64,000 bases of DNA from Schizochytrium sp. TIO01 (GCA_004764695.1 SMSO01000037.1:4688747-4752746); one strand, 5' to 3'. Shown: positions 3,843-29,931, numbered from the stretch's first letter. Numbers and translations are program-made. Notes: generated from the sequence alone by a model not told the origin.

Positions 3843-5310
3843 TTAGCTAAGGACAATCAAACAGCTCGATGGGAAGCCGGCCTTGATCACAGAGGACTGG
3901 ACAGTTTCAGCAAATTTGCAAGATCCACAAACCACCACCCGAAGGCCCGGCTCTAGTGAAGACTCGTCACTAGGGGAGCGCGAGTAAGTTTCTCCAAGAT
4001 GCAAGGCTAACAGATCTTCATTAACACGACTTCCCTCACTACTGAGGACTACGCGGAAGTTTTCAAGCTGTTTGTTAGCCGCAAGTTCCTCACGGAACGG
4101 GACCTCGTCCTCAGTGCGACTAGCAATGACCATGGAGAAAGTAGGAAAGCTAGCAGTCTCATTATGGAGGGCCGCATAGTCTAGAATTTGAAGCATAGGC
4201 ATCACGCCAGTACCTTGGGCTACCATACAGATGTGATCAATGTGTACCTGGGGTTTGGCCCGGCGGAAAGAGGCTGCGCCATAGGCAGCCATGGCAAATC
4301 TACCGTCTACGACTGCAGGCGCGCATGGGCGCCCGTCGAAATTGGACTTTAAGGGACTGATTCTGTTCTTTGATTGATGCCTCGTCATCGACACATCGTA
4401 CAAGACTCGCAGTCATAAGACTATCTGCATAGAGCTTCAGGAAAAGATCAAACTCGCCAGGCCCTGCAGGGGCCCTGCCCAAGATTTCTGACATGGTTCC
4501 TGTCGCAGACCCCGCTGCCAGCATCGGCGTAAAAGGTCTCTCGATCAGCTTTCCGTTAATCTCCTTCATCAACTTTACATAATGTCCTGGCTCACACATG
4601 AGTTGTAGCGTGGCTTCAGAAATATCCTCTACAACCCGAATCCTAATCCAGAAGCAGTGCTCCACCTCGCTAACTTCCGCAGCGACAACTTCACATTTCA
4701 CCCAATCATTAGACTCCATGAATATTTTCTGCTCGGACTCTACAGGACTCGCAGGAGCTTGTGAAGGAGCTTCAGAAATCATTGAAGCCGGCATAGTTCC
4801 TTGAGAGTCTTTTGCAGAAGACCTTCCTGCGACTCGACTCGTAACCCTCGCAAGAAGACCAGCTTTCGACGTTACAGGAGGCCGCACCTGGTCGAGATTT
4901 CGGGTTTGAGTTTGAGGGTTCTGGCCCTGGTTCTCGTCTACGAGCCACCCAACCTCGCAGCCGCTGAGAAGACCCATGCTGACCCAAGGGTGGACTTCTT
5001 CAAAGAGTTTTGTGGCGTCGTCGGCAAGTGCTCTTTCCAGCTCGTCTGCGCCGCCAGGGTGGTAGGGCACGTACCGGGTGACGTTATAAACTTTGCCGTG
5101 AAGTGCCATCCAGAAGTCTTGGCGAAGGCTGTTGTGGGCTCGCACCTCCGCCATTGTGAGAGCGCGAGGACGCTGGCCACGAAGCCCTGCAAGATCATCG
5201 GCCTGGACCATTAGTCGCATCCAGTCCATCTGGCTGAAGCCAGCCCCCAAGGAGACCTTCTTGCCAAGCCCGCGGGCCGGAGCGGGAGTGACGCTACCTC
5301 CCGAAGACAT
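3843..5310 (-). CDS. Cytochrome b5 reductase 4-like flavohemoprotein (cytochrome b5 + FAD-binding + NAD-binding), split by a +1 frameshift near 4341
   Basis: ORF 4300..5310 has KKVSLGAGFSQMDW, WMALHGKVYNVTRYVPYHPGG (b5 heme motif) and RPFTP (FAD). Overlapping ORF 3843..4403 has MVAQGTGVMPMLQI and VVVCGS (NAD domain). Confidence 0.85.
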
Positions 5311-7698
5311 CGAGCAAGTCCCGGAGACCTTCGGACGCTCTAGTGGAAGGCGGTTAATTCAGGGTTCGAGAACTGATCGGCAATTACAGCTTTGCTAACA
5401 CTACGTTTTTGATGGTCTCTTTTGCTCCTGCGAGTTCACTAGTGATGTATGACATATAATAATAAGGGAGTATATTCTATGATTTCTGTGGAATGAATTC
5501 ACTTCCGAGTGACAGCTTCGATATGCAGATTCGCTTTTTACGGATAGATACTAGTCATTGGTTTGACATCCAGAAACCAAAAGTGGATGTGGTCAAACGA
5601 TGGTCAGGAGGGCCAAAACTAAGCTCTAAGCAATGATTCGGCTCGTATAAAATTGCTCGCAGTTTTCATGATTCCGGGAAACTTATATATATAACCTTGC
5701 ACTTTATAGGCAGATGCAGGAGAAACATAAAACTTACGAGCACTTTACTTCCTTGTACTTTTTCCGGGTTCTACTTGTCATCGAATAAAATGCATGGTTT
5801 AATCAACACCCACTACATAGTTGTTTTTTGTTTTTATTTTTGTTTCAAAGGCGGAGAAGCTATTCTTCTGTTACAAGACTCTAGAAATGCAGTCATTATT
5901 TTTATTATATTTATCTGTTCTTGTGACAATCGTGCTTTGGTGAGACAATGAATTTCGAGATTCGCTCGACTTGAACTTCGTTTGCGTGCGAATGTCGCAG
6001 GGAAGCTTCAATCGAAGTTCTAATAACTAAGATGTTGCCAACACCAGACTAAGGAAAGCAGACCCGGCTACGGGCCCGCTTCTGAAAGAAGTAGAAGCTT
6101 TAATGCCATGTCAAGTAGGACTTTTAGGGTACACACAATTAGGTTTCTTAAGTTGGGAAATGCCGGACACCGCTCTTATTCTGCAGTGAGTTGTCCTGAC
6201 GTCACTCGACAGCACCACCTCGACTGCGATGTCGGTGCTTCGACACCAAGTACAGAGTGTAGCACAAACTTTTAAGTCGGCAGGGAACCTGAGAACACAA
6301 GCTGCACACTCCTCAACACAGTGTTGCGTCGACTTCTCCTTCATTATTGCCTCGATCATACAATCGATGACATTCTGGTGTAAAGTACCATTTCGCTAGA
6401 GCAGGTGTATCCAACTGGGGGAATGGCACGCTTCAGAACATGCATGTGCTTTACGCCTCCTCTGTAAATGCAGATCGTTGCGCTCAATTAGTGTCCTTGC
6501 ACGCTTCTACTTCCTGTGGTGCACACCCTGCCTGCATAACCGTGAAGTTGACCAAATTCTGGTAATTGTATTATCCATCGATACTCCCTCGTTCAGACAG
6601 CCACCGCGTTTGTTAGGTACACAATGCAGTCCTTCTGCATTCGTGATGTAGAGTCTTCACATCCTTTGCAATAATTTACACGTTTGTGCTGAAGAAAATG
6701 GGGACTTATCAAAGAGACTCCACCATAATCTTAAAAGCTGGGCTCGTCCACCCGGGATGCGTTTGGGACCAGGTTTCGGAGCTAGCTACAGCCCCGGGAC
6801 CGAGATTTTTCTACCTAATTGAGTTGTGTACTGCGGACGGAATCAACTTCAGCTCAGTTCACAAGACGATGTAGCTCATCATAATGCTGCCGGCGGACTA
6901 TTCCGCAATCCGCTCCGGCAGAGCCTGGAACCATGGACATATTTGACCCACAGACAGCTTAGAAACTAGGTCGCACGTAGTTTTACTAATATCTACGAAG
7001 CGAGTATCTGGGAGACCGAGAAGTCACGCTGGAAACAAAACGACATCCCAACGTAATCAATCTATTCCGAAAAGGGTGGCAGAGTTGGATGAATGCACGT
7101 CTTAAGTGAGCGATTGACTTGATTCATTAATCGTCTTGTTCTGATCGTCTTTTGTTAGGCATTCTCTCAACGTTTTGCCCAGAATAAGCCAGACGATACA
7201 CAGATATCTTCTGATAAACGAAGATAGCATGAATATGCCTAACATGCTCATGAAACTCATCTTGCAAGCGAGCCTGGGTGCTTCCTCCCTAAAATGTGGC
7301 ATTTGCAAGCGCACATAATAAATCAATCATTTCTTTGCGAACCTTCTCATGCCATTTCAGAGGTTTCCCCAAAACAGCAATCAACATCCCTCCGGTAATG
7401 AATGGCGCAATTCATCGGCACGTTTAAACATCGTCTTGAGCTACCCAGCCAGGACCTCCTCATCTTAACTGAAGAGCTTAAGTCTCAGTCTAGGGCGGCC
7501 CCGTACACCTTTCATTGCAAAACAGATCTTGCCTGCGGAGCAGAGATGTAATCCTACTTTCCAAGCATATTGTGATGTCCCTACACCAAACTTATCTCAA
7601 AGTCATGGCATGAAGTATCAGCACCGCTGGCATTTGTATTTAATGTCACACTCTCTATGTTGGCAACGAACTTAATGGTAGAGCGCTGCGCTCTGTTG

Positions 7699-8170
7699 CT
7701 ATTGGTGCTTGGCGTGGTTGGTTTTTCGTTTTACATATCTCTCAAGCATTGTACAGAACCATTCACACTGCGAGAGGACTACGCATAGGACCCAACGATC
7801 TGTTAGCAAGATGTGTGTAAACACAGTATTTGCTTCCCCTTCCTTTTTGATGTCGCGATTACCTGCTGATTTAATCCATGCGTAGATGTACTCCTTGCCG
7901 TTGACTATTTCGGCATGCGCCTTCACCGCTTTAAGCACATGGTCAAAAACGCCTTCCCTGGGTACATGATTGGGCCAAAGTTCGATAATTTTGGCCTTGA
8001 GAAGGGTATCTCCACGTACTTGCTAGGCACCATGGATCGGTTTTGGGTTCGGTGTGTTGTGTAGCTTTTCTTTCTTGGCCATGATAGCTTCCGCTTGCTT
8101 GATGTCATGGGCCTCTATGGCCATTTTTTCTTTCTTTATGGCGTGGGTGTCCTTCTTGATAGCGGCGACG
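7699..8170 (-). pseudogene. Decayed coding remnant of unknown family; may extend towards ~6100
   Basis: One frame reads AAIKKDTHAIKKEKMAIEAHDIKQAEAIMAKKEKLHNTPNPKPIHGA*QVRGDTLLKAKIIELWPNHVPREGVFDHVLKAVKAHAEIVNGKEYIYAW..., ~155 codons with one internal TAG; downstream sequence is fragmentary. Confidence 0.45.
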
Positions 8171-10235
8171 GGGCTGGCAGCAGCAACGGTTTTCCGCTTG
8201 CTCCACTACACATAAGGCAAGCTTCAAAACACCAGCATACTTCAACCTCATTCCTGTTTACATTAATGTCAGAATCAAACCCTTTGAATTAAAGCGACTC
8301 GTGATTCTACTAAAAGGCTCCAGTTTCACTTTAAGTTCTGTTTTGGGATGGGATATTTCATTTTGAAAAAGTCAAGGTCTTAAAGACGGGTAGTCTCTGT
8401 TGACACGGTCCCATGGAGCCAGGACTGCATCATCACAGTTCTTGAAATAACTGAAATGCTGCATTTCACAATGCTGGTCAACGCTTTACAGACATGCCAT
8501 CTTCTTACGCGTTCTTCTTTCGTCCCACTTCATCGAGGAGAAACCGTCGCCCGAAATCCCCTCATCTGTCTGTTCGGGGTTCCTCGCCTTCAAGTCTATC
8601 TATAGTCAAACATACTAATTCAAATAGACTTAACATCAGGTCAACGTGAATCAAAGAGTAATTAAAGGATGGCATTGCTGAAAGAGTTTGCTAGCTCATT
8701 AGATGCAACAGAACGCGCAAGCAAGAAGCCTTTGAAGAAGCGTTCATGATTACATTCTAGTAGGGATTATGTTTGGATACAGTGCCGCTCTGAGCCTTGT
8801 ATCATACCTCTGCTTGGTAAGCCAAATGTCGATAGAAGACCAAAAGCTCTTGAATTGGTCCTTCTATGATGACTTAATGTGGGTACTTTATCCCAAACGA
8901 TGCTCTTCAATACTCGCCAACGTAGGTTTCCCGACTTGAATCATGGAGGCAGCAAAAGACCAAAGTCGAGTCATACAGATAGAAACATTCAAAGCAGCTA
9001 TGAGCAGACACGGGTGTCTAGGTCCATCAAGAAAACCTTAGGAATCTATCTTCGATTCAAAGTTTTGCTCGAGGACTTCTGAAAAGAGAGACTGTTCTTC
9101 AAATTAGCTGGAGCAGTCTCCATTATTTTATGATGCTGCAGCGTCACGTAGCAAAAATAATATTTTTAACTTTACTTTTTTATAAAATTATAAACATGAC
9201 ATGATGATTACCAGCAATACTACCTAGGCCAAGTCTAGGGTAAAAGGAAGTAGCATGTTGAGGCTCGTTCGCGTGGCATCGTGATTGCCGGTACCTTCGT
9301 CGTCGAGGATAGCAAATACATCATGGTCCGCTCCCGCTCTTTGCGCAATGAGTCGACGCTTGAAGACTACGAAGAAATATGAAGGCTCAAGTGCTCGAGG
9401 AGAGGCTTCATTTCACTGATCCCGCGCGTTTGTGCTAAACCTGCTGGAGTGAGGTGCATGATTTAATGACCACTACCTAGTGCCTGTCTAGCGTTTAAAT
9501 TAAGTGTCTTAGTTATATTTATTTAAAAAAAGTTTTAAAAAAAAAAGTACAACTCAAGTTCTATGAACACAGAATACTTATACAGTCCGGGATGCTTAAT
9601 TTAAAGCGATGATGTTCTATCAGCTCTTTAAAAGCAGCGACATCCATTGACAAGCCGAGTCTAGCCCAGCTAGTACTACCCGAAAGCTGACCTGGAGTCT
9701 TTTGGCCCATAGGTTTAGACGAAAAGTCCTCGATTTTCGTTCGATCTTTCTTTATCTCGATCTGGGTTTGGTTTTTGTTACTTCCAGTAGGGTGGCCTTT
9801 CTACTTTAACCGTATATTGGACTAACTAGACTATAAATAGGCCTCGATGCTACCTATCTCCCTTGAGCTAAAAACATACAAATGTATATGTTTAGAATAG
9901 AACTATTGGTAGGCCTACAATGATAAATGTTTTAAAACCCTAAAAACACATTTAAAAACAAACTTCTAATAGAAAACACTACATCAGGAATACTTTTTTA
10001 AAATATACAGTTTCTTTTTTATATGTGATAAGAAGAGATGAAGAACTCGAGTTCAAAACTTGAAGTTCTGTGCAGCAAATCCCAATCAGCGCGGCCTGTA
10101 TTCTTGAACTTCTGCAGGCATCACAGCATCAGCACCGGTTAAAGTAGGATATGCGACACGAGCGAAGGTGGAGATCCGCCCTGGCACCGCAAGACTAAGA
10201 AGATCGAGGTTTGTTTCGTGGGTTGAGAAGGGAAG

Positions 10236-10496
10236 ATGCTGGGAGGCAAAACTCTTCTCCGGCGCCTTAGCGGAGGCAAGCGTAGCAAGAAGAACTCTGC
10301 GGAGCAGCCTTTGAAGAGCACACCAGAGGTCGAAGCAAGACTTGCTAAAATGCAGCCAGTCGCCTCCAACCTGGCGTACGTACCGGTATCAGCGCGTATC
10401 ACACCTGAAGGCCAACAGCCTGCTCGTCGTTCGCAGCCCTTGTGGATGGGAGCACTCGCCCCAGGAAGCTGCTTCGCTGGAGGGCCGGCTCTGTAA
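10236..10496 (+). CDS. Small basic protein, GPA[IL]-tail family copy 1 (subfamily A), 86 aa
   Basis: Ends PARRSQPLWMGALAPGSCFAGGPAL*; paralogous to 14173..14478 with mostly synonymous differences in the tail; aagATG start. Confidence 0.8.
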   Translation: MLGGKTLLRRLSGGKRSKKNSAEQPLKSTPEVEARLAKMQPVASNLAYVPVSARITPEGQQPARRSQPLWMGALAPGSCFAGGPAL

Positions 10497-11902
10497 ATAT
10501 AAGTTACCTATAATCACATGCCCTAAGGCAATTGGCTCAGCACGAGAAGCAAGCGATACAAGCTCGTACAATATGCTTTAGTGGCAGGCATTCTTCATGC
10601 GAAATGGCTCAAGTTTAATCTACTTTGTTGTTGTTTATCTACTTCGCACTGTTTCCATTAGACCAGTTGTGCTAAATTTCGCAGAATAGAAACCTTGTGT
10701 TTCTACTTCATTCCTGTACATCTCCTTTAAATCACTATATCTATTTTCCATCTGAATTACTTCCAAAGCCTATTAATTTTACAACTACAGTAAGGTTTTC
10801 CACCTCCCTTTGTTAAATAGTGAAATCTTGCATGGATGCGCAGCTGATAAGAATTGTCCAAATGCAAAGTTATGGGCCTTGCTCATTTCTGCGTGAATGT
10901 TCATTATCTTCAGTACAATTATAAATCGTCTGAAGAGCGTTGGGCTCGTAAACTCGAAAATCGCATAATCGGTAACTTATAAAATCTTAAGTTACATAAT
11001 GCACAAACCTTCCACAGATGAGTAACCTGCTACTACTGGTTCGGCTGGTCCTGCTCGGCGCCAATTTCAACGGCAGCCATGGGCACGCGATGTCCCACCA
11101 GCTCGAGCTGTCTCCTATACCGAAAGGAACTAAACCAAAATGCTGCATATGTTATTTTTCACAACAGTATATAATTTGGCACACAAGGTCATTTCATTGT
11201 GAAGACCCTGCGCCTTCGAAACTCTCCAAATTTGTCGCAGCAACGGCATCAGAACTTCAACAAGCCCCGAGGAGTAGTAGATAATCCTGTGGACACCTCA
11301 TAAGAAACTACCTACGAGAAGCCAACTAACAACTTCTCAACTCCTCAACTCGATAAACTAAACAACAAATACACATATCTACAGTACAGTAGTCACTATT
11401 CTACTTCTATCAGAGACTTGAAGAAGGTAGAAGGTAGTTTAGCTGCCTTTTTACATCGTTGCATCCTCTCTACCAAAAGCTGACTAAGAGTTCACTAAAC
11501 CCTATTACGCCGCGTGGCCACCCTAGAAAATAAAAAACATTTAAACTATTTATTATCACATTAACGAGACAAACAAAAGAGAAGTTCAGGCCCGCTCGGA
11601 GCGGCTCCAGGCAAGCTCGCGCTCGTGATGATGGAGGCCTTCTTCACATCACAAGCTGTAGAAGGTAAGCAAGTACCTGGCGACCGCCGTGGTCGTATGC
11701 CCCCCTCTCCACAGCTGATGACCTTTCCATCAAAACTGATCAAAGCGAGCGAGAACTTTGAAGGCTGCTGCTTTGGTGAGTCATTCTTCTTCTTATTATT
11801 ATTATCTCGAGCAGAGCAGAGCAAGCGCGCCCGCTATAGTAAACGATAGCCGGGGCTAGCGGCGGCCACCCTACGGAGACGGAAGAAGAGTTCGGAGCGT
11901 GG

Positions 11903-11958
11903 GTCTGTCTGTCTGTGTGTCTGTCTGTTTGACTGTCTGTCTGTCTGTTTGACTGTCT
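11903..11958. repeat. Imperfect (GTCT)n microsatellite
   Basis: gtctgtctgtctgtgtgtctgtctgtttgactgtctgtctgtct... Confidence 0.85.
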
Positions 11959-12186
11959 ATCTTTCTTTCTATTGCAAGATTGCTGTCACTCACTCAGCCC
12001 ATCGCCTCCGCTATCGTGCATCGCTGATGCTTGCTTGCTTGCGTGCGTGCGTGTGTGAAAATCTCCTCGAGGCCGCCGAGATCTCCGTCTGCCGCTGTCC
12101 GCCTGGCGGCGCCTGTTCGCATTCGAGCAGCCGAGCAGCTGATTAACGCAACCTGTGTAAATGTCTCTATCCCTTTCTATCAGTGT

Positions 12187-12214
12187 GTTTGTTTGTTTGT
12201 TTGTTTGTTTGTTT
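12187..12214. repeat. (GTTT)7 microsatellite
   Basis: Direct reading. Confidence 0.9.
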
Positions 12215-12585
12215 GTCTCTCTATAGCTAGATTTAATTGTGAAAAGCGATCGATCTTGAAGCCACCGACTGAGGAGACAAGCGTCTGTCTGTTGCAGGGT
12301 GAAGGCTGAGCCTGCTTGGAGAGCGGCGATGATGCATGACCAGCTCTTCACCGAGGACGGTCTTGGAGTTCAAGTCGATCCTGAAGAGCTCAAGAGCGAG
12401 CGATCTCTCTCGTGCGCAAGAATTCGAATTCCCAGCAGCTGTCTAACCGACCTTCCTTTCAAGTTGAAGGCCTTACTTCTAACAGACTCTTCAAACGAAC
12501 TGCCTACCTACTATTATCCGAAAGCAAAAACCTTTTTTTGAGATTATCTTTTTTAATTTAAAAAACAACAACATTAAGTACCTCT

Positions 12586-12612
12586 TAATAATAATAATAA
12601 TAATAATAATAA
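12586..12612. repeat. (TAA)9 microsatellite
   Basis: Direct reading. Confidence 0.9.
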
Positions 12613-13430
12613 ATTATAAATTATAACTTGGCTGCTAGAATTTGGAAGCCCCTCGTAGGGTGGCGCCCTCGACTTACGAAAGGGTGGCTCGGAGTTCAGC
12701 TCGTTTTCATAGGGTGGCGCCTTCTGAGGCGCAAAAACTTTTTGATGCAGCAGAAAGTACTATGGTTTGCTATGGAAACGCTAAGGGGGAAAAATGGTCT
12801 GCTGCCAAGTTTGCGCTGAATTGTCAAAGGTGACTGAATCAGTGAGCGTGAGAAGAACTGTTTATGATTTTCTTTTTAAAGTACTTGCTTTTTTCTTTTT
12901 AAAATTAACTAAGAAGAGCATCCTCGCTTGTTGTGTGCATGACAGCTAGCTGGCCTCGAAAAGAAGACCACAAGAAGAAGAAGGGGTGCAGATCACGCGC
13001 TCGGACACCGCTTTGGTGCAGCTGCCGGAGGGCGTCCTGAAAATCCTACAGCAGCCTACGGCTTTGCGGCTTCTTTAGTGCATCAACCGCTAAAGTACCA
13101 CGGGAATTTGTGAGCGAGTTCGGAACTCGTGAGTTGAGTGCGTTATCATGTTTTTTTTTTTTTTTTTTCTAAACCTAAATGTGCTTCCTTTTCCTCTAAA
13201 CAACTAAAAACAGATCATACAATCATCAAATAGAGTTTCCTTCGCTTTTGGAGGAAAGAGCTTTGGTTTTGGTAGCTTAGCGTAGGGTGATCGCCTTTTC
13301 GAAGTGAAGGCGCGACGAACTCAGGTTATGGAAAGTCTGTTGAGGGCGTGGGAAGCGCAGAGGAACGCGAGCGAGACAGCGTACTTACTACGGCGCAGTA
13401 GTCGGCTGTCCGCTCGAAGCCGCAGCCTCA

Positions 13431-13462
13431 ATCTGCTGATCTGCTGATCTGCTGATCTGCTG
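13431..13462. repeat. (ATCTGCTG)4 tandem repeat
   Basis: Four perfect 8-bp units. Confidence 0.9.
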
Positions 13463-14172
13463 TACCAGCTGTGCCGCCGCTTTCAAGCCCCAAAGCTGTC
13501 TTCTCGTGTAGTGAACGAATGGGCGCCATCTTCAAAGAATGAAAAAGTGGACTCTGTGGTTGTGAGCTGGAGCTTATCAGCTCATTAGCGTAGCTTCGCA
13601 TAGCTTGGGATTAGGGGGATTTTGGTTTGATTGATTTATGGCAGTTGCGTGCATGAAAATCAATCGATCAATCAATCAATCATTCAATCAAAGAACAGCC
13701 TGCTCACTGCGACTTCGCGAGCACGGGTAGACGAGAGAGAGAGTTCCGAGTTGGTTTTTGGACATTGGCATTCGTCACCAAATTATTAGTTTTCTGATTT
13801 ACTGCTGAGATAGTTATCTAGCCTAGGTAATAACTATATGTACCTATGAGGATTGTTACTTTTGTAAAAAGCGTTGAGGTGTAGACCGCGATCGCTGAGC
13901 CTGTAGCATAGGTTTGCTTATGCTAAATACTAGGAATGAAGGTCGCTAGCTAGGACTCTTTGACTTGAAGTGGGCATGATTTGGAGGACTTTTGAGGAGG
14001 CAGCAAACCAGAAACTAATCAACAGCAAATCCCAAACGACCATCAAGTGTGCCCAGTCACTGCACAGACGACGAGCAGGCTTTCCGTGAGCACAACGGCT
14101 GACACGTATCAGGACAAGAGAGCAGCAGCAGCAGCAGCAACCAGCAACACATACAGACACCTGTATCCAAAG

Positions 14173-14478
14173 ATGATGATGGGCAAGTCGATCCGCCTTG
14201 GAGGCAAGAAGAAGTCTGCCAACAAGGACGAATGCAAGAAGGACGAGATCCGCACTGCCTCGAGCTTCAACTTTGAGCGGCCGGCATCCCGCCGTGCCTC
14301 CACCACAACTCTCCCTCGTGTTGAGATGGCTTCTGCGAACGTTCAGTATCTCCCCATGGCCGCCAAGTCCCAAGTCTCCCCGGTTGGTGTCAAGGCCCCT
14401 GTTCGCCGCAGCAGCCAATCCATCTGGATGACTGCGTTTGCTCCTGGCAACTGCTTTGCCGGAGGCCCCGCGATCTAA
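14173..14478 (+). CDS. Small basic protein, GPA[IL]-tail family copy 2 (subfamily A), 101 aa
   Basis: First in-frame ATG at 14173 (aagATG); MMMGKSIRLGGKKK matches the copy 1 N-terminus; ends PVRRSSQSIWMTAFAPGNCFAGGPAI*. Confidence 0.82.
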   Translation: MMMGKSIRLGGKKKSANKDECKKDEIRTASSFNFERPASRRASTTTLPRVEMASANVQYLPMAAKSQVSPVGVKAPVRRSSQSIWMTAFAPGNCFAGGPAI

Positions 14479-15273
14479 TCTTCTCCTGTCTTTAAAGAAG
14501 AAGAAGAAGATGGTCAACCTTCTTTACACTGTATCGGCAGAAAACTTCAATCCCAAAGCTGGCTAGCGAGGTAGCTTGCTGAGCAATGGCAAGAGCAACG
14601 TTTTCAAATTGGCAATCGCACCCGGGTCGTCGTTGCCTATTCGCTCTGCTCTCAGCTGGTAAAGCTTACCCGCATAGGGCTTGAACTTTTACTTGCCACA
14701 CTGTCACTCCTTTCATTTATTCTTATTGTCTTTGCGCACGAGCGTGGCACCCGTCTAAGTCGCTTTGCGCAACGCCTCGCTCTCCTGCGCCCTTTGTTTA
14801 TAAAAAGAACCAACCATTCGTAGATTTTCGTAGATTACTCCAGTAGATATTATTTCTCTTCTCACCATAATTGTTTCCTCCTCCCCTGTTTTGTTCTCTG
14901 GAAAACACTCACGTTGTGTTTCTAGTTGGCTCGAAAGCGCAGCCGAAGAGCCCAGCTTTTGATTGATTGAGACCCTCTTCCACGCACACCCATCCTGCCA
15001 CCCTGACACCCTGACATGAGATTAATCTGAAGACCCACCCACCACAATCAGTCGCACTTGCTTCCTAACCGAGCGAACGGAGCCAAGGAAACCCACGCTC
15101 TAATGCCGTCTCTGCTGTGCTCAGTACTCATGCCGCAACACGTCCATGGGCGCCTTCAAGTCCACGTTGAAGCCGTCAAGCCCATCAACTTGAACAAAAG
15201 CCCATGCAATTCGTTGACGAAGGCGGCGCTCCTGTAAAACGGCTGCTTCTCAGGCCAACCATCAGCGGCGGTA

Positions 15274-15301
15274 GCAAGCAAGCAAGCAAGCAAGCAAGCA
15301 A
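15274..15301. repeat. (GCAA)7 microsatellite
   Basis: Direct reading. Confidence 0.9.
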
Positions 15302-15895
15302 TATCATAGATGTCCAAACACGAATGAATGACTCGCGGCCTCTTACGATACACGTCGATGGCAGCATTATTCCCCCGCTCACCGCTGTAGAGCTTCTGGT
15401 ACATGGCCAGCAGCGTCTGCGTAGGGTGGCGGCGAAGCACTTACAAAAGGACCCCAAACTCGTCGAAAACTCGGCTTCCTTCCGCTCGATGCTTCCCCGT
15501 AGCCTCTCAAAGAAAATCGAAAGCGAATTCAGCCGCGCCCCGCGACTCCAGCTCTCTCGCGCTCGAGAGCTTGCTTTAGAGCTCGAGAGCTTGAGCGCTT
15601 GAGCGCTTGAGGGATTGGGAGCTTGAGATATTGCCGTAGAGATTGAGCTTATAGACTGATAGAGCTCTGGCGCCAGAACGATGCGACTCCAGGGTGGCCT
15701 GGGAGCGACCTTTTGATTGGTGAGTTTACACACGTGATTTCTTTTTAGACTAATGTGGAGGCCGTGCTGGCGAAGACGAGAGCCACCCTATCGAGAGGCT
15801 CGGATCGGTACTGCCCTCCTAGCCTTATCGTTAGCAGTATTCAGGTTCACTTTTGAATTGTGGTAGTTATTTCTCACTTTCGAACTATTCCTTTA

Positions 15896-15968
15896 AATTG
15901 AAAAAATAATTGAAAAAATAATTGAAGAAATAATTTAAAAAATAATTTAAAAAAAAACAATTTTAAAA
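15896..15968. repeat. AT-rich 12-bp minisatellite (AATTGAAAAAAT), about 5 degenerate units
   Basis: aattgaaaaaat aattgaaaaaat aattgaagaaat aatttaaaaaat aattt... Confidence 0.8.
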
Positions 15969-17095
15969 CTTTATGAATAGAAGATAAAAGTATAAAGGAG
16001 CAATAAGGGTGCTTTTGGAAAATGAGATCGGTAGTGGGAAATGTTGGGTTTGAAGTTATGAGCAGATCCTTGTGCAGGCAGGCTGTCGGAGGGTGGTGGG
16101 CACGAATGAATACTCATTGAAGGAGGGCGCACGGCCAGAAAAGTGGACTTAGCCCTCTAGACATAATTAAATTTTAAGCTGCCCTCAAGGGAGCTTTGAG
16201 AGCGCAACACTCGAATTCTCTTCGATCTCCAAACGTTCTCCTTATTCTGAAGTGGTGTAAGAAAGGCTATGATGCCGTAACTAACTCTTAGCCAAGCTAA
16301 AAGAGCGAAAAAGCGCGGCTCTGGAAGAAAAGGTTTGATGTTCCTTCGCGAACTGACTGACTGAGTTCCATAGTTTTGGATAGGTAGGTTCTACCATGGA
16401 TTGGAAATACCTGAAATGAGATTAGTATGATGATTCCTGAAAACAGTTTTTACCAATCAAAACAAACTGAAGGCTGTTTGTTGTAAGCGGGTAGAAAGTT
16501 TTGGCGTCTGAACGCGGCGCGAGTTCCGAGCGGGAGTCGGCTTGACGCTCGAGAGTCGTGACTCGACCAGCGAGAACGACGCTGTGTGCGTTGCAGGACA
16601 TAGAAAGCAGCGCCGAGAAGAGCTCTCGTTTTGCCTTTTACTCTTTCTCTTTCTTTCTGTTGTAGGACGACAAACGATGAAACATGTGATATTTTCTTCT
16701 TCTCCTCTTTCTTTTTCTGAAGGCTGGAAAAAACAAAAAACAAAAACTTCTTTTTAATTTAAAAAAGAAAAAGAGGGTGGTAAGAGTAGGTCGGTCTCTT
16801 AAGGCGCGACGCTAGTAGTGGAGAGTTGAGAATAGTTTTTAAAGTTGAAAAGAGATTGAAACGACTGAGGGGCAGAAAGCCGAGAGACTCGGGCAGCAAA
16901 CCCGAAACGAAAGAGTGCTCTGAGAAATAAGGAAAGGAGCGCGCAACGTATGTGAGTGGGCAGCGAGTAGCACCACAGGTGGATTGGAGAAGAAGATATC
17001 AGCAGCGAGCGGTTGATCGAGCAAGAGACCCGCAGTCGTTGACAACCACAGCAAAAGCCGCAGTGACCAGTTGTTGTTGTAGAAAAGCAAGCACA

Positions 17096-17440
17096 ATGGC
17101 ACTCAAGAAGATGTTCCGTGGCCTGCGTGGCAGCAAGGAAGTCAAGCAGGTTGTACAGAAACGCCACGGACCGTGCCTGCCGACGATCCAGGAGGACGAG
17201 CCAGAGGTCATGACCATGAACAGTATTAACTTGAGCATTGCTCGCCTCTCGTCTACTGCGGCTCGCAGGGCGGCTCGAAGTGCCAAACATGCAGCCAGGA
17301 CGGCACACATCCAGAAGGAACCCGTCTTCTTCTCCATCCCTACCAAGAAGCTCGCGCAGCAAATCCAGCAAGAGCAAAGAAAGAAGGAGTCGTTTTGGGC
17401 ATCTGCCTTTAACGGCGGCTTCGCTGGCCCTGCTATCTGA
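17096..17440 (+). CDS. Small basic protein, GPA[IL]-tail family copy 3 (subfamily B), 114 aa
   Basis: ATG at 17096 (acaATGG); MALKKMFRGL...LPTIQE...LSIARLSSTAA...PVFFSIP...RKKESFWASAFNGGFAGPAI*. Confidence 0.82.
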   Translation: MALKKMFRGLRGSKEVKQVVQKRHGPCLPTIQEDEPEVMTMNSINLSIARLSSTAARRAARSAKHAARTAHIQKEPVFFSIPTKKLAQQIQQEQRKKESFWASAFNGGFAGPAI

Positions 17441-18732
17441 GTCTCCCTCGCAGACTCCTGACTCGTTATAATTTTGTACATATTCATAAACAACCCCTTT
17501 ATTGCAACTCGTTGCGGATGTGCAGGCAATCTTTCGTTTTCACGCCTTTCGCATCCAAGACGAGTTTGCCTCTGCGGAGTGGTCCCTCTCGCCTGTTGCA
17601 TTGCTGCACCAAGGTTGAACGATGGCCTGCTCTTGCTCAAATAGATATATACATATCCCTCAAGATTATGTCTCCAAGTAGTTTTCAAGAGCGCCGGCTT
17701 CTGATCAATGCTCAGGTTTGCTTTGCATGCGATCGATGCCATGTTCTCTTTGATACGCTTTATCTTGTGGCTTCCGTAGAAGGCCTCCGCTCGTTTGTGA
17801 GGCCCTGTAGCGTTTTTTTGTCTTTCAATCTCTTTTTCATACATAATATTTATAATCATGACGTTTACTCTCTCACATCTGTTTCTCCTAGACCCTTTAC
17901 GCCTGTACTGCACATCCCATCTCCAATACACTGTCAAGACACCATGGATAGGGTGGCTGGCTTGCCATGAGATGGTATCCTCTTCCCCGGTTTTCTTCTT
18001 TTCATCGAGTTGCCCCCCACAGTGATACAGGCGACACCTAGGTGTAGCTCACCTGAAGATGGTCCGCAATCACCGTTAGTGCCACTCCGCGTCATCATTT
18101 CCTCCACTGGCTTCTCAGCCACCCTATTCGTTTAGGCCACCACATTTGTTCTTCAAGCGCACAGCTCGTCAATGCGTTCAATTCCCCCAGACGCTGTCTC
18201 TAGAGTAGCTCTGAGTTACTCGGTATATTACATAGTACTTGAGTCAGTACCTACTACCTACTTACTGCCTACCCTAGCGACCATACTAGTAGTAGAAGCT
18301 TTCTTCTCTTGGTAATTTTATCAATTATGATGCAAAATGAAAAAGGTTTCTTTCTTTCCTCTCGCACAGTGCCAGAACAGACCTCCGTAGGGTGGCGCAC
18401 TGCGCAGCTGGAGAGGAGCTCGCGCATGGCTGAACCCTCGATACGGGTGGTGGGCATCCCTCAGACTACTTCGATAAAACCCGCACCATCACGCGCCCAT
18501 CCAGTCTGGCGGCAGGCCTGGTGACTGACGATGGTGCGGATTGCATCCATCACCAAAGCTGGTTCGTTCTCATGACCTCTGGCGTCATAACCCTGAGACA
18601 CTCACTGCAGGAGCCAACGAAAGGAAGCCAACGCCGCCAGCTCGCAGAGAGAGAGAGAGCAGTGGGTAGGCACTAGTGGCGGGTGCAGAGGAGAGACACG
18701 CAGCGGTGGCAGGGGCAAGAGCAGGTACCATT

Positions 18733-19368
18733 ATGACACTCAGAGAGATGCTGCGCAATCTTCACGTGAGGAAGCACGAGGGCTCTGGAGAAAAGAAACC
18801 AGGCGGCCTTGCAGCCAATACAGCAGACGCACAAGCTGACCCTACTGCTGGGAAGGATGAAACTCAGGATAAGAAAACTTCTGATGGAAAGAGAGACCAA
18901 AAGCTAGAAAATAAATTGCAAGCTCTGTCCACCGGGGAACAAAAGCTGCGACAACATACACAAGCCACCCTGGAGGCATCTGCGCAACAGAAGAAACCAG
19001 TAGTAGTACAACAGAAGAAGCATGCTCACAAAAAAGCAGAGCGGCAATCAGGCACGAAAACAGCTAAGAAGGAAACGGCAAATCCTACACAACAAGAACA
19101 CCTCCCCGCAATCAGCGAGAAGAAAGCACAAATTATGAAAGTAAAAAGTGCCCAACTTGCCATCGCGCGACTCGACTCAACAGCAGCAAAGCAGGAGGTG
19201 CGCAAGAAGCGACGGCCAGTTGAGAAACCAGCGGATCCAGTAGTGTTTTCACTTCCAAAGTTCGATCCGAACGATCTGTCGCGGGTCCACGAACCTCCTC
19301 GTCGCAAACGCTCACGATGGGCAGCTGCTTTCTCTGGAGAAGGAGGCGGATTTGGCCCTGCCATCTAA
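18733..19368 (+). CDS. Basic low-complexity protein, GPA[IL]-tail family copy 4 (subfamily B), 211 aa
   Basis: ATG at 18733; MTLREMLRNL...LPAISE...LAIARLDSTAA...PVVFSLP...RRKRSRWAAAFSGEGGGFGPAI*; motifs collinear with copy 3. Confidence 0.82.
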   Translation: MTLREMLRNLHVRKHEGSGEKKPGGLAANTADAQADPTAGKDETQDKKTSDGKRDQKLENKLQALSTGEQKLRQHTQATLEASAQQKKPVVVQQKKHAHKKAERQSGTKTAKKETANPTQQEHLPAISEKKAQIMKVKSAQLAIARLDSTAAKQEVRKKRRPVEKPADPVVFSLPKFDPNDLSRVHEPPRRKRSRWAAAFSGEGGGFGPAI

Positions 19369-19829
19369 GTAAAATCTTTACTTTCCCTCTGAGGGCCTTG
19401 AAATGCTATGCCCTCCTTGCTGGATTGCCCCTTGTACATATATCCTTGTCTCTTTTTTTCGTAGCTCGTTTATAATGTAGTTTTGTTTTATTATTATGGA
19501 TCCTTCACCTCTTCTCTGATGTTCTTGTTCAAGTCTTTGTTACGGCAGCTTAGACAACTAGATGATAAATTATATTATAACTTCGCTCGAATTGTCGCCA
19601 GCACTCATTCGCTTCCCAAGACCACTTGGCGTTTGGTTTTTCGCATTCTACTTGTAGTGGCACGAATCAATCATACTCAGATATAGAAATGAGATGTTTG
19701 CGTATAATCAAGGTCACTCAAACTGCCCCTGATTCAGGCTTACTTTTGCCAGAACAACTGATTTGTAAGAAACCTAATGTGAAAGTAGCAAACCATACAT
19801 CAACAGCGGTGATTCTCAATTTAGTTCTA

Positions 19830-20645
19830 TTATAGTTTAAAGTCCTTGGCGGCACTTGACAGATCATTAGGTATGGACAAACTCGCCTTAGGCGGCGGGG
19901 CTGGGCCTCCATTCAACGTAGACGATAGTGGCCTTCGCATCGGCGATGTAGACTGGGGAGCTGTACTCATCATCGGCGTGGAAGAAGTGGGGATCATCGG
20001 TGGAGATGGCGACGGGGAAGGTGCTGTTGACGACGACCAATCTAGGTCCATACTGTGCAAGGCGTCTGCTGCTGAAGTTGAACTCACAGGAGAAGCCTTA
20101 GCGCCAGCTGCAGGTGGCTTTACAGGTACTGGAGCGGATATGTTGCTGGCTGCTGTGGAGGAGTTGAGTCCAAGGAGATCGCCGCTGTGGTGTTTGCTGC
20201 TCGCTGCCTGTCCAGGACTTACAACCCGAGTTGGAGGAGGCGTCGAGCTTGAAGAGTTCCCACCACCGCTGGGGGCACGACCACGGCGCGCATGCTGCTG
20301 CTGTTGTTGATGATGCTCCACAGGCCTGAATGATGAAGATGAAGGTCTTTGGGAATGGGCTGTCGCTACCCCGTGCAGCGATAACCGTGCAACCTTAGCG
20401 ACGATTTGGTTGTCAAAACGTGGCACAAGAGCAGCGTCGTCGAGGAGGTCGAGCCAGACATAAGTGTTCTTGAAAGCTTTTTTAAAACGGAAATGGTAAC
20501 CACCAGGCAGAGGGAAGGTAGTTTTGACATCGCCAAGACGAACCTTGTTCGCAGGCCGCCCAAGCGTGTAGAAGTTCGGGTGTGCTTCGTCATCTCCGTC
20601 CTCCGGCACAAAGTAATAAACGCTGGTCCGTGTGGAGGCGCTCAT
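19830..20645 (-). CDS. DIX-like domain protein with disordered Ser/Pro-rich C-terminus, 271 aa
   Basis: First ATG at 20645; VYYFVPED...VRLGDVKTTFPLPGGYHFRFKK...YVWLDLLDDAALVPRFDNQIVAKV fits the DIX pattern. Confidence 0.75.
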   Translation of the reverse strand: MSASTRTSVYYFVPEDGDDEAHPNFYTLGRPANKVRLGDVKTTFPLPGGYHFRFKKAFKNTYVWLDLLDDAALVPRFDNQIVAKVARLSLHGVATAHSQRPSSSSFRPVEHHQQQQQHARRGRAPSGGGNSSSSTPPPTRVVSPGQAASSKHHSGDLLGLNSSTAASNISAPVPVKPPAAGAKASPVSSTSAADALHSMDLDWSSSTAPSPSPSPPMIPTSSTPMMSTAPQSTSPMRRPLSSTLNGGPAPPPKASLSIPNDLSSAAKDFKL

Positions 20646-21603
20646 AATCCTAGGCAAAAGAAGAGCTCCAAAGAGCTCTAAGCCCCTTGAGTCCCGTTAC
20701 AGTGGGAATTTCGGCGGAGAGGCAAGGATATCGATCGATGCGAAGCAGATCAGGCGCCTTCCAAAGTTCAAGTGTGGCAAGTCCACAACAGCGTGGCATG
20801 CACCGCAACTGCCTGCTGCCGCGACGAAGCAGCGAAGCGACCGAGCCCAATCGGTACGCCCAAACCTGCTCTATATTTTCTACGCTAGCGGGTTAGATTC
20901 TGTCTCCATGAAAACCCTAGAGACGACGGATATATATATATTCAAATCCTTCTCCACCTTCGTCTTCGCCATCATGCTCTCCAAGAGCATCGACTTTTCA
21001 CTAGGCAATGACTACCCCGTTCAACTAGGAACTACTAGTGTTCCTATTGTTTCAAACATTCCCAAAGTTACCAGAGTTCCGAAAATGCCCTTGTGTTCCA
21101 GGGGTTCAAAACCCCGGCGTTCCAGGAGTTCTTTACCAAAGGGGCAGACTGGGGGCGCAGCGCGCACGGAGGAGGAGGCAATGCATCGGAATGGGGAAAG
21201 AAAACATTGTTTCTTTGTTGTTGCTGTTTCTAAGTGAGGAAAGATCATGAAGAAGAAATGATAATGCGATGTCATCGAAGGCGCACATCAGAACATAAAG
21301 ACTCTCCAGCAGATCCTTTTCAAAGAGCGGACTTGAGGCGAAGACACAACGGAAGCAGGCCGTGGGCACAGAGGCTTGTGCGGGCAGATCCTGTTGCGAA
21401 GGAGGAGGCTCTGAAAAGAAGGCCTTGTCAAGTCAGGGTTCCGGGCTGGAGAAGGCTTTTGGAGTCTGGGAGGCTTTCGCGTGGAAGTGATCTATCTCTA
21501 GCCGAGTGACGAACTAGGTAAGTACTTACGTACTGTCTACATAAGAAAGAAGAAGATCTTAGGTCGCAAAGCGAGCTCGTGGCTTGTTGGGTTTACGTGG
21601 AAA

Positions 21604-27645: not shown

Positions 27646-29931
27646 ATGGTGTGTACTATGGGTCCCTACGCGTACTTCTCCGCGCTGGGTCAAAGAAAAC
27701 AAGCTATAAGAAGCATGTGCCAATACGATCTACGCAAACTTGAGTTCGCAGACTCCAAAGAAAGCACAACAAGCCCAGGAGGCATGCAGCAGGATGGCCA
27801 TAAGCTCTTGAGGAGGACCTCATCACGAAAGGGCCGCGCCTGGACCTCGCAGACAAATGTTGCGAAACCCAAGGCTCCGTCGCGAAGTCGGCGGGAGAGC
27901 ATTTTATCACAACGCCCTGAAAGACGAGCGTCTAAGATAGTGCATAGTAGCACAACAGATTCCTCAGTAATCAGCGCTGCAACGCATCATAACTTGAAGA
28001 GGGAAGGGTCAACTGCGACGAGAAGTAGTGCGCTTGTGGAACGTGGGAGCAACAACAAAACTCCCAACAGGGATCTTTGGGCTAAGGTCCGAGCAGCTGT
28101 AAAACTCACTTCTGCTATTGGCCGTATGCACAAAGAATCAGATGGGGCCCGACGGAAGCGTATACGTAGGCACTGGGATATTGCTCGGCAGATCGCCCGG
28201 GCTGCAATGTCTTTGTCAACAATAAACAACAAGAGAGCAGACGCTGATAGCCATGTAGGAATTCGTGACTACACTCGATTTATTAAACTTCTTGGCGCCC
28301 ATCCCTCAGCACGCACAGATAATGACCTCAATTTTATGATGAAGTCTACTGCTCATCTTGCAATCTTTAAAGGCGCGGGGAGCTCTGCGCCACCACCTAG
28401 CTCTAACCAAAACCCGACACCCGAGAGTCTTGTGAGTGCGGAGATCTCTGAGTCTCAACATCGTGAAATTTGCCGAACTATGACTATTCGCAAGCTTAGT
28501 TCCTCCCATGAGTTTGTCTTTCGCCAAGGCGACACAGGTGAAGAGTTTTTCATTATTTTAGAAGGGTCTGTTCTTGTACAACGTGATGTAAATAATTCTG
28601 GTGTAGCTCACACCGTAGCCAAGTTAGAGGCTGGCGGGAGTTTTGGAGAGATCGCTTTATCCTCCAAATTTGTTGTTCGAACTGCATCTGTAGTTACGCT
28701 AGAACCTTGCCTTTTACTAGTGATTCATAAGGACGACTACCAGCGAATCTTGCAGAACACACATCAAGAAATATTTGATCGAAAGATTCGATTTCTAAAA
28801 CTTGTTCCGGCCTTCCAAGACCTTACTGAAAAGGAAGTATTCAATCTCTGCGTATCGCTGCACACCTATCGAGTACGAGCTGGATCGTCTGTTGTGAGAG
28901 AAGGAGACCTCCTTGACCCGCTCCGGTTCTTCATTATTGTTAAGCGTGGAGAACTCGAAGTTCGCAAGCTTGCACGAAAATCGATGCAATCAACGAATAA
29001 AACAGACAGTAAGACGATTATGAATTCTGATAAAGTCCTTACACTATGTCTCATGGGTCCGAGTGAAAGCATTTGTGATCATCACTCACTACATGGAAGA
29101 GAGGACCTGGACTACCGCTATCCATTTACGGTTGTGGCAAACACCTTGTGTGAGTACTATTGTATCTCCAAGCACGACCTATTTGGGAAACTTAGTCGTA
29201 TCTCTTTAGCAAATGTTCAAAAGAGGATTTCAAAATTTCCAGATGAACGTCTGGTTCGCAACGCACTTGCAGCATCAATCGGCTGGAAGGAGTATAAAGC
29301 CGACTTGATAGCCGAAATTTTAAGCAAGAAGGAACTTAGAGGGCCTGCTGGATTTAACCAACTAAGCCCTTCATATGTTCCCGAAACTCGTATATCTCGC
29401 CGTCGCAATGTTGACTTTGAGCTTGATAAACCTACAAGGCCTACTCCAAAACGGCCTACTATTGCATACCGTAAAAACTCCTCGGGAGGTCCTCGGGGCA
29501 GCACATCAGGACCTCGAACCAGAATCAGCTGCTTTGAAAGGGCTCGCAGAGCGTCTGGCGTTGACATGGATGCAACCTCCCATGATTCTGATGACAATGA
29601 GGACGCCAGCGTCCAACGTAAAGCATATACTTGCGTATCACAGGTTTATTCAAGGTCTCAAAATACTGAAGAACAACCCGAAGTTATTAATATTAAAAAC
29701 GAAGCAGCATGCACTGGTACGTATGGCGAACTGAATTCTCTTGAGCGGGCCCACATGCGCTCAAAGCGTCGAGAGGCCCTACGAAAGCGGCTGGCTGAAG
29801 GTGCACACGAACTTGATGAGTTTCTGCAAGACGGAATGGAACTCACGAGGCATGTCTATGAAAATGCACTTTCGCATGGAGCAAGATACTATTGTCGTTC
29901 CCTTGCGCTCACGACTGAAAGCGATCGGTAA
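27646..29931 (+). CDS. Cyclic nucleotide-binding domain protein with two cNMP domains (CNBD2-like)
   Basis: VFRQGDTGEEFFIILEGSV...GGSFGEIAL....RTASV (intact phosphate-binding cassette); second, degenerate domain VVREGD...FFIIVKRGELEV. Confidence 0.85.
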   Translation: MVCTMGPYAYFSALGQRKQAIRSMCQYDLRKLEFADSKESTTSPGGMQQDGHKLLRRTSSRKGRAWTSQTNVAKPKAPSRSRRESILSQRPERRASKIVHSSTTDSSVISAATHHNLKREGSTATRSSALVERGSNNKTPNRDLWAKVRAAVKLTSAIGRMHKESDGARRKRIRRHWDIARQIARAAMSLSTINNKRADADSHVGIRDYTRFIKLLGAHPSARTDNDLNFMMKSTAHLAIFKGAGSSAPPPSSNQNPTPESLVSAEISESQHREICRTMTIRKLSSSHEFVFRQGDTGEEFFIILEGSVLVQRDVNNSGVAHTVAKLEAGGSFGEIALSSKFVVRTASVVTLEPCLLLVIHKDDYQRILQNTHQEIFDRKIRFLKLVPAFQDLTEKEVFNLCVSLHTYRVRAGSSVVREGDLLDPLRFFIIVKRGELEVRKLARKSMQSTNKTDSKTIMNSDKVLTLCLMGPSESICDHHSLHGREDLDYRYPFTVVANTLCEYYCISKHDLFGKLSRISLANVQKRISKFPDERLVRNALAASIGWKEYKADLIAEILSKKELRGPAGFNQLSPSYVPETRISRRRNVDFELDKPTRPTPKRPTIAYRKNSSGGPRGSTSGPRTRISCFERARRASGVDMDATSHDSDDNEDASVQRKAYTCVSQVYSRSQNTEEQPEVINIKNEAACTGTYGELNSLERAHMRSKRREALRKRLAEGAHELDEFLQDGMELTRHVYENALSHGARYYCRSLALTTESDR

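Follow-up and report, generated by a model that had tools for sequence, protein, structure and literature searches.

What are the four small open reading frames (ORFs) that lie in tandem at positions 10,236 to 19,368 of this DNA from Schizochytrium sp. TIO01, and why do all four end in nearly the same few residues? The window analyzed here is the whole stretch of 64,000 nt, and all positions are counted from its first letter. Its G+C content is about 45–46%, and the whole genome that was searched alongside it comprises 64 Mb. A sequence-only reading of the window had proposed an unannotated family of microproteins with basic, disordered bodies, the function of which needs a free C-terminal motif. 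We find that the four ORFs (g1–g4) are, with very little doubt, real protein-coding genes under selection, and that the tail they share is unique in this genome. The family is real, old and lineage-restricted; three of its four proteins are already present in transcriptome-derived sets, without a name or a function. We see about an even chance that these proteins are disordered adaptors or regulators, in which the tail docks into a partner able to recognize the free C-terminal carboxylate and a neighboring basic-Ser site may act as a phospho-switch.

The four ORFs of 86, 101, 114 and 211 aa are present as claimed, and all are co-oriented on the plus strand. Counted from the first ATG of each ORF, g1 occupies 10236–10496 (86 aa) and g2 14173–14478 (101 aa), and these two constitute subfamily 1. 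Subfamily 2 consists of g3 at 17096–17440 (114 aa) and g4 at 18733–19368 (211 aa). The division into two subfamilies is supported by blastp, with E values of 1.4e-13 between g1 and g2 and 3.6e-15 between g3 and g4. An in-frame stop codon lies 12 nt upstream of the g1 ATG, and g2 starts with three Met codons. The g4 protein carries an insert of approximately 100 aa, charged and rich in Lys, Glu and Gln, which is placed after the N-terminal motif. The bodies are basic as described, with computed isoelectric points (pI) of 10.2–11.0. At 86–211 aa, the products are small proteins, and the label of microprotein does not suit them. The term unannotated holds only in part. The family is missing from the NCBI- and UniRef-type sources of the protein collection, but three of the four proteins were already deposited in the transcriptome-derived sets of MMETSP or EukProt.

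The tail is 20–24 residues long and reaches the stop codon in all four genes. It is laid out as a dibasic cluster with Ser, the motif W-x-x-A-[FL], a linker that is rich in Gly and differs in length between the copies, and F-x(0-1)-G(1-2)-P-A-[IL], followed by the stop. A single pattern, [RK][RK]-x(1-6)-W-x-x-A-[FL]-x(2-10)-F-x(0-1)-G(1-2)-P-A-[IL]-stop, fits all four, and the endings are exactly those quoted in the sequence-only reading. In g1 (10425–10493, plus strand, aa 64–86), the tail runs from RR and Ser through W-x-x-A-L and a Gly/Pro-rich stretch to F-A-G-G-P-A-L and the stop. In g2 (14404–14475, plus strand, aa 78–101), it reads RR-S-S, W-x-x-A-F and F-A-G-G-P-A-I before the stop. 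The subfamily 2 tails are R-K-K-E-S, W-x-x-A-F, F-A-G-P-A-I and stop in g3 (17378–17437, plus strand, aa 95–114), and R-R-K-R-S, W-x-x-A-F, a Gly-rich stretch, F-G-P-A-I and stop in g4 (19300–19365, plus strand, aa 190–211). Invariant in all four are the Trp, the Ala three residues past it, and G-P-A at −4 to −2, with the last residue counted as −1. The final residue is always aliphatic, and the stop codon follows [IL] directly. Between the two hydrophobic anchors, the linker spans 4–7 residues, depending on the copy. From the Trp onward the tail comprises 14–17 aa, and its mean hydropathy (Kyte–Doolittle) is 0.53–0.91, far below the level of a membrane span. A basic cluster with Ser stands 1–4 residues ahead of the Trp in every copy. 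This Ser matches the consensus of basophilic kinases in g2, g3 and g4, and the match is poorer in g1.

Shuffled sequences and the rest of the genome were used as controls for the tail. In the six frames of the window, there are 4 matches to W..A[FL].{2,10}GPA[ILVM]-stop, compared with a mean of 0.0 in 200 shuffles; GPA[ILVM]-stop alone also gave 4 matches, compared with 0.155 in the shuffles. The genome scan suggested along with the sequence-only reading, which we ran with a degenerate DNA pattern, returned 4 matches in the 64-Mb genome, all of them in the cluster and all forward, while the reversed control returned 0. Both the shuffle counts and the genome-wide result of 4 against 0 exclude a chance origin of the tail. 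The motif is apparently undescribed.

The tail and the proteins that carry it are conserved at the protein level, as had been proposed. By the Nei–Gojobori method, the proportion of synonymous differences (pS) for g1/g2 and for g3/g4 is 0.75–0.76, which is saturated and at the random level, whereas the proportion of nonsynonymous differences (pN) is far lower, at 0.41–0.42. For g1 and g2 the contrast sharpens over the final 20 codons, with a pS of 0.84 and a pN of 0.19. Reading the DNA of the last 17 codons of this pair, we counted 13 identical residues, 9 of them with different synonymous codons, in agreement with the earlier count. In a comparison of conservation, the sense frames gave E values of 1e-13 to 1e-15 and their antisense shadows 4e-4. 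There is no nucleotide similarity among the four units, so their likeness must be old and held at the level of the protein.

Evidence that the genes are transcribed comes from protein sets derived from transcriptomes. The products of g1, g3 and g4 are present, with identical or nearly identical sequence, in the poly(A) data of MMETSP, EukProt or both, and g2 is found on Logan contigs. An identical g1 protein is in MMETSP (P0009), an identical g3 protein in MMETSP and EukProt (P0001), and an identical g2 protein on the Logan contigs (P0004). The g4 record is an MMETSP TransDecoder ORF of 211 aa, labeled 'type:complete', with 1 residue different (P0006). Variants from other samples differ by 1–2 residues, always outside the motifs, and the DNA of the cluster is present in sequencing runs of 12 studies. 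All four ATGs have A at position −3, and none has an in-frame ATG further upstream. In this genome, the G+C content at third codon positions (GC3) serves as a marker of expression class: it is 0.80 in an RPL7-like gene, 0.75 in PP1c and 0.64 in Cdc48, compared with 0.39–0.55 in ordinary neighbors. The values of g2 (0.71) and g3 (0.68) are like those of highly expressed genes.

The source of the g4 record, MMETSP0958, is presumably Aurantiochytrium limacinum ATCC MYA-1381. Its header gives TAXON_ID=87120, a number that the NCBI taxonomy now assigns to the fungus Rhizopogon burlinghamii; A. limacinum is 87102, and the digits look transposed. The predicted proteome of A. limacinum is included in MMETSP (PMC12221091).

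Apart from the tail, two further motifs can be aligned across the family. An N-terminal basic amphipathic motif, M-x-L-x-[KR]-x-[ML]-[LF]-R-x-L-x-G-x-K, is encoded at 10236–10280 in g1, and M1, L11 and K15 are invariant in the alignment. Its counterparts lie at 14173–14211 in g2, 17096–17137 in g3 and 18733–18774 in g4, all on the plus strand. A central motif, S-x-N/Q-L-x-I-A-R-L-x-S-T-A-A-[RK], is found at 17222–17266 in g3 and 19147–19191 in g4 (plus strand), with weaker aligned counterparts at 10362–10397 in g1 and 14329–14367 in g2 (plus strand). Two blocks are confined to subfamily 2 and are likewise on the plus strand. The block L-P-x-I-x-E is at 17177–17194 in g3 and 19102–19119 in g4, and P-V-x-F-S-[IL]-P, which precedes the basic-Ser site by 20–22 residues, is at 17321–17341 in g3 and 19237–19257 in g4.

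The apparent disorder of the bodies agrees with structure prediction, which gave no fold. The AlphaFold models have a predicted local distance difference test (pLDDT) value of 59–60 and a predicted template modeling (pTM) score of 0.13–0.22, and the ESM Atlas model has a pTM of 0.18. Three helices of low confidence are predicted for g3. The first (residues 3–10) coincides with the N-terminal motif, the second (residues 43–71) with the central motif and an Ala/Arg-rich stretch, and the third (residues 84–106) covers the basic-Ser site together with W-x-x-A-F. Beyond this last helix, the chain ends in an extended G-G-F-A-G-P-A-I. The sole helix in the g1 model is at the Trp.

The cluster is also marked by a short DNA site. 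There are 17 copies of the octamer AGGGTGGC in the window, where 1.13 are expected (15-fold), and 14 of these copies fall between 9789 and 18971. They are found in both orientations and are grouped upstream of each gene: at 9789; at 11517, 11865, 12657, 12681 and 12711; at 14997, 15423, 15691 and 15782; at 17950, 18118 and 18389; and at 18964, inside g4. Ten of the 14 are preceded by T. Genome-wide, TAGGGTGGC is at the level of chance (169 against 155), and the cluster alone accounts for approximately 6% of all copies. Because the units share no other DNA, we infer that selection has kept the octamer sites as a shared regulatory element. AGGGTGGC is thus a putative shared cis-regulatory site, and the four genes are probably co-regulated through its clustered copies. 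Other tight clusters of the octamer are present on contig C13 in ORF-poor stretches, at 3576933–3579065 and 3692016–3698344; neither of the two contains a family member. On C13, an RPL7/uL30-like ORF is preceded by one octamer site at a distance of 144 nt. No copy of AGGGTGGC is present at the loci of PP1c and Cdc48.

We then asked whether the family has relatives. The view that no known domain is present stands, with no Pfam match for g1–g3 and, for g4, only matches with E > 1, far below the cut-offs. A profile search of the Protein Data Bank (PDB) returned 0 matches at E values up to 10, and the ESM Atlas held no look-alike of the family proteins. When 1.84 billion representatives were searched with a HMMER profile built from the four proteins, only g1–g4 and one spurious hit were retrieved. 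In a collection of 5.8 billion proteins, word-indexed searches with g3 and with the profile of four sequences brought back only the four proteins. Neither metagenome contigs, searched with both subfamily alignments, nor viral contigs yielded a relative, and no fifth paralogue was found in the genome itself with g2, g4 and the profile as queries. The strong hit to a characterized family that the sequence-only reading had named as counting against it did not appear in Pfam, the PDB or the protein collections. No relative from beyond this species was seen in any collection searched, which suggests that the family may be restricted to this species, although its absence elsewhere is not proven. Since the paralogues are so diverged, distant orthologues could fall under the E-value thresholds of such huge libraries.

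The sole non-self hit of the profile was P0005, a protein of 695 aa derived from the SRA. It is a translated tandem repeat with a unit of approximately 66 aa and was rejected as spurious. Part of the tail is imitated there ten times, by R-R-S-S-P-L-W-I-F-S-F-A-L.

What, then, would such proteins do? Short linear motifs are all that selection has maintained in the disordered chain, namely the N-terminal amphipathic basic helix, the central helical motif and, above all, the tail. In the reading that we favor at about even chances, the tail would dock into a folded partner by means of two hydrophobic anchors (W/F and F..[IL]-COOH), and this partner would read the free C-terminal carboxylate. A basophilic kinase phosphorylating the adjacent Ser could switch docking. 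The invariant residues, the varying linker and the low hydropathy point to a specific pocket and not to general stickiness or membrane insertion. The stop codon directly after [IL] in all four genes, despite saturated divergence, fits a partner that reads the carboxylate. The phospho-switch is plausible because the basic-Ser cluster next to the Trp matches basophilic-kinase sites.

Several points weigh against this reading. The evidence for expression comes from transcriptome-derived protein sets, and selection is deduced from old paralogues only. The link between subfamilies 1 and 2 is non-significant in a profile search (E approximately 1 among 1250 frames); we join the two in one family because they share the tail and the layout and lie in tandem. 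The Ser site is a consensus match only, and in g1 the basic residues are at −1/−2 and not at −3. The proposed requirement for a free carboxylate is drawn from just four sequences, all of them related.

The same features can be explained in other ways. The basic cluster, the Trp/Phe tail and the N-terminal helix might bind membranes or lipid droplets peripherally, with phosphorylation of the Ser serving as an electrostatic switch of the kind exemplified by MARCKS. Such binding would suit the dibasic cluster directly ahead of W-x-x-A-[FL] in all four proteins, the net charge of +1 to +7 over the first 20 residues, the helices at residues 3–10 and 84–106 of the g3 model (the latter over the Trp) and the oleaginous nature of the organism. 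However, a strict G-P-A-[IL]-stop and an Ala three past the Trp are not expected of generic lipid contact, the tail reaches a hydropathy of just 0.5–0.9 and contains Pro, Gly, Asn and Glu, and there is neither a membrane span nor a lipidation site, so that we consider lipid binding unlikely. A degron at the C-terminus, with a ubiquitin ligase or the adaptor of a protease as its reader, would be a special case of docking and would make the proteins short-lived regulators. The position of the motif exactly at the carboxyl end in all four, the disordered bodies and the phosphorylatable Ser adjoining the tail are all compatible with this. Known eukaryotic C-degron classes such as those ending in Gly, Arg, Glu-Glu or Ala do not match P-A-[IL], no library comparison having been made; moreover, a GC3 as high as in g2 and g3 suggests products that are abundant and not unstable. 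The degron is thus less likely still. Another possible reader of the tail is the ribosome, either through a stall of the nascent chain at termination (of the type of conserved-peptide upstream ORFs, SecM or TnaC) or through a free tail placed in a ribosomal cavity, as in a dormancy factor. Conservation up to the stop codon, the abundance of Trp, Gly, Pro and Ala with basic residues before them, a pI of 10–11 and the codon usage of g2 and g3 would all agree with a ribosomal role, and one of the few other AGGGTGGC clusters adjoins the RPL7-like gene. On the other hand, the N-terminal and central motifs are conserved as well, no conserved ORF lies downstream of any of the four, and ORFs of 86–211 aa, of which at least g4 is TransDecoder-complete on its transcript, are not upstream ORFs. 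With AGGGTGGC missing at the PP1c and Cdc48 loci and not enriched genome-wide, we regard a ribosome-directed tail as improbable.

The possibility of a processed peptide had been raised in the sequence-only reading and fares worse. Here the tail would be cut at the dibasic site, which lies 1–6 residues ahead of the Trp in all four proteins, or an octapeptide bounded by prolines would be excised from g1 and g2, where G-[SN]-C-F-A-G-G-P stands between two prolines, two residues from the end. In g3 and g4 the second proline is missing. No signal peptide was seen, as judged from hydropathy and not with a dedicated predictor, the N-termini being basic and hydrophilic, and no protease, cyclase or transporter is encoded by the neighboring genes, which are unrelated. 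In usual peptide precursors, the leader is conserved and the product part varies, whereas here the would-be product is conserved and the would-be leader is variable. A secreted peptide of this kind is therefore very improbable. The last alternative is that the ORFs have no function, being chance frames on non-coding transcripts or an artefact of assembly. In its favor, no orthologues were found. Against it are a pN far under a saturated pS, the genome-wide count of 4 tails against 0, the presence of the proteins in transcriptome-derived sets and of the DNA in runs of 12 studies, and the A at −3 of all four ATGs. There is also no repeated DNA element behind the similarity of the proteins, and this alternative is close to refuted.

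Returning to a tail that docks into a folded partner, we compared g1–g4 with named motif classes, and every class tried fails as a family-wide fit. The p97/Cdc48 N-domain binds the SHP motif, the consensus of which contains two invariant Gly residues, as well as the VCP-binding motif (VBM; E-h-RRRR-L-x-h-h) and the VCP-interacting motif (VIM; R-x5-A-A-x2-R) (PMC5389986). Like the tail, the cofactor motifs of p97/Cdc48 are short, often located at protein ends and composed of basic, hydrophobic and Gly-rich parts. The SHP box h-x(1-2)-[FW]-x(0-1)-G-x-G-x2-L is matched strictly by none of the four, and by g4 only when the last residue is relaxed to a large hydrophobic one; the g4 sequence A-A-A-F-S-G-E-G-G-G-F is one residue off the consensus. 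VBM and VIM are absent from all four, in which four successive basic residues are never followed by a hydrophobic one and R-x5-AA-x2-R does not occur. PDZ ligands of class I and class II, which carry [ST]-x-hydrophobic or hydrophobic-x-hydrophobic at the carboxyl end, were rejected, the −3 residue being Pro in all four. No tail matches the peroxisomal targeting signal PTS1, [SAPTC]-[KRH]-[LMFI]. The best 19-aa hydropathy window in any of the four is 0.93, so none is a tail-anchored membrane protein, which would require a span of approximately 18 or more strongly hydrophobic residues. Neither the N-myristoylation pattern nor a CaaX box occurs in g1–g4. An arrest peptide in an upstream ORF was also rejected, as no conserved or domain-bearing ORF lies downstream and the g4 ORF is called complete on its transcript.

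Other classes fit a part of the family. The Pex14-ligand motif W-x-x-x-[FY], which is of low specificity, is matched by g2, g3 and g4, and g1 has Leu instead. As in motifs of the Pex5 type, W and F in g2–g4 are four apart on a short helix, and the models put a helix at the Trp. The flanks of the Pex5 motif are acidic or polar, unlike the basic flanks here, and the invariant G-P-A-[IL] end would be left unexplained. The PP2A-B56 pattern [LMFI]-x-x-[ILV]-x-E, which is degenerate, is present as L-P-T-I-Q-E in g3 and L-P-A-I-S-E in g4, and is absent from g1 and g2. For protein phosphatase 1, the RVxF motif [RK]-x(0-1)-[VIL]-{P}-[FW] is found in none of the four, and only its V-x-F core is present in g3 and g4. 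A complex prediction for PP1c from the same organism (residues 1–302) with residues 62–114 of g3 gave a score of 0.01, from which the predictor offers no verdict.

Some small regulators resemble the family in design. Inhibitor-1 and DARPP-32 dock through R8-K-I-Q-F12, 23 residues before the PKA site Thr35/Thr34, which is seated in the active site of the phosphatase (PMC5758809). These proteins are heat-stable and disordered, and the P-V-x-F-S-[IL]-P block of g3 and g4, 20–22 residues before the basic-Ser site, recalls their arrangement. However, g3 and g4 have no basic residue within two positions ahead of the Val, and g1 and g2 are without the block. Inhibitor-1 and DARPP-32 are also animal proteins with no conserved C-terminal tail and no detectable homology to g1–g4. 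The closest in design is 4E-BP, a small (approximately 100 aa) disordered regulator built from terminal and internal motifs, with no homology to the family. Its TOS motif sits at the extreme C-terminus. This motif binds raptor, and 4E-BP further has a RAIP motif at its N-terminus and is controlled by phosphorylation (PMC2966049). The body of 4E-BP is near-neutral and not basic, its tail is different, and g1–g4 are without the Y-x4-L-hydrophobic motif that binds eIF4E. A docking peptide at the exact carboxyl end is also known from the ribosomal stalk, where the flexible region of P1/P2 ends in a Gly/Phe-rich peptide. There, an acidic stretch precedes the peptide, unlike the basic one here, and the sequence is unrelated.

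More speculatively, the tail may be a new class of C-terminal short linear motif, gated by the basic-Ser site, that docks on a conserved machine, with the cluster driven by its own transcription factor through AGGGTGGC; we hold this fuller reading as a tentative one. Candidate machines would be a phosphatase, an AAA ATPase or the ribosome. Should the partner be such a machine, the tail motif would be a new regulatory handle; otherwise, the family would be one more lineage-specific orphan. In either case, a tail of 20–24 residues that selection has kept for long must matter to the cell. Genome annotation systematically overlooks small disordered proteins built from motifs, and in protists such proteins have hardly been explored. 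The tail peptide, with a free or a blocked end, is a ready bait for the partner, and the host is transformable and industrially important for the production of docosahexaenoic acid. The clustered AGGGTGGC sites are a rare and clean candidate for a cis-regulatory element in a thraustochytrid.

The genes around the cluster are unrelated to it. They encode an Ig-domain protein, cytochrome b5, DIX, NUDIX, Rgp1 and cyclic-nucleotide-binding proteins, and one has a weak sub-threshold GAF match. In the 14.5-kb stretch 5311–19829, there is no other ORF of at least 200 aa besides the antisense shadows of g3 and g4. To standard annotation this stretch would look like a gene desert, yet four transcribed small genes lie inside it. 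Rfam returned no family for the cluster region (5000–15900 and 15960–20000). The antisense and intergenic ORFs at 16999–17937 (minus strand), 13930–14517 (minus), 15185–15733 (minus), 15204–15602 (plus) and 11986–12351 (minus) contain no Pfam domain and have no paralogues apart from the g3/g4 shadows.

Further along the window, the ORF at 19830–20657 (minus strand) has a clear DIX domain (Pfam E value of 4.5e-12), followed by a low-complexity Ser/Pro-rich tail, in this stramenopile. A protein of 761 aa with a cyclic-nucleotide-binding domain is encoded at 27646–29931 (plus strand). It adjoins an ORF of 1944 aa at 30269–36103 (minus strand), in which the GAF-like match is weak and under the cut-off. 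At 50168–52908 (plus strand) lies a long gene for a Glu/Lys-rich coiled coil, split into two ORFs (50168–50992 and 51082–52908), probably by an intron or a change of frame. The strong purine skew at 50–52 kb is due to this gene.

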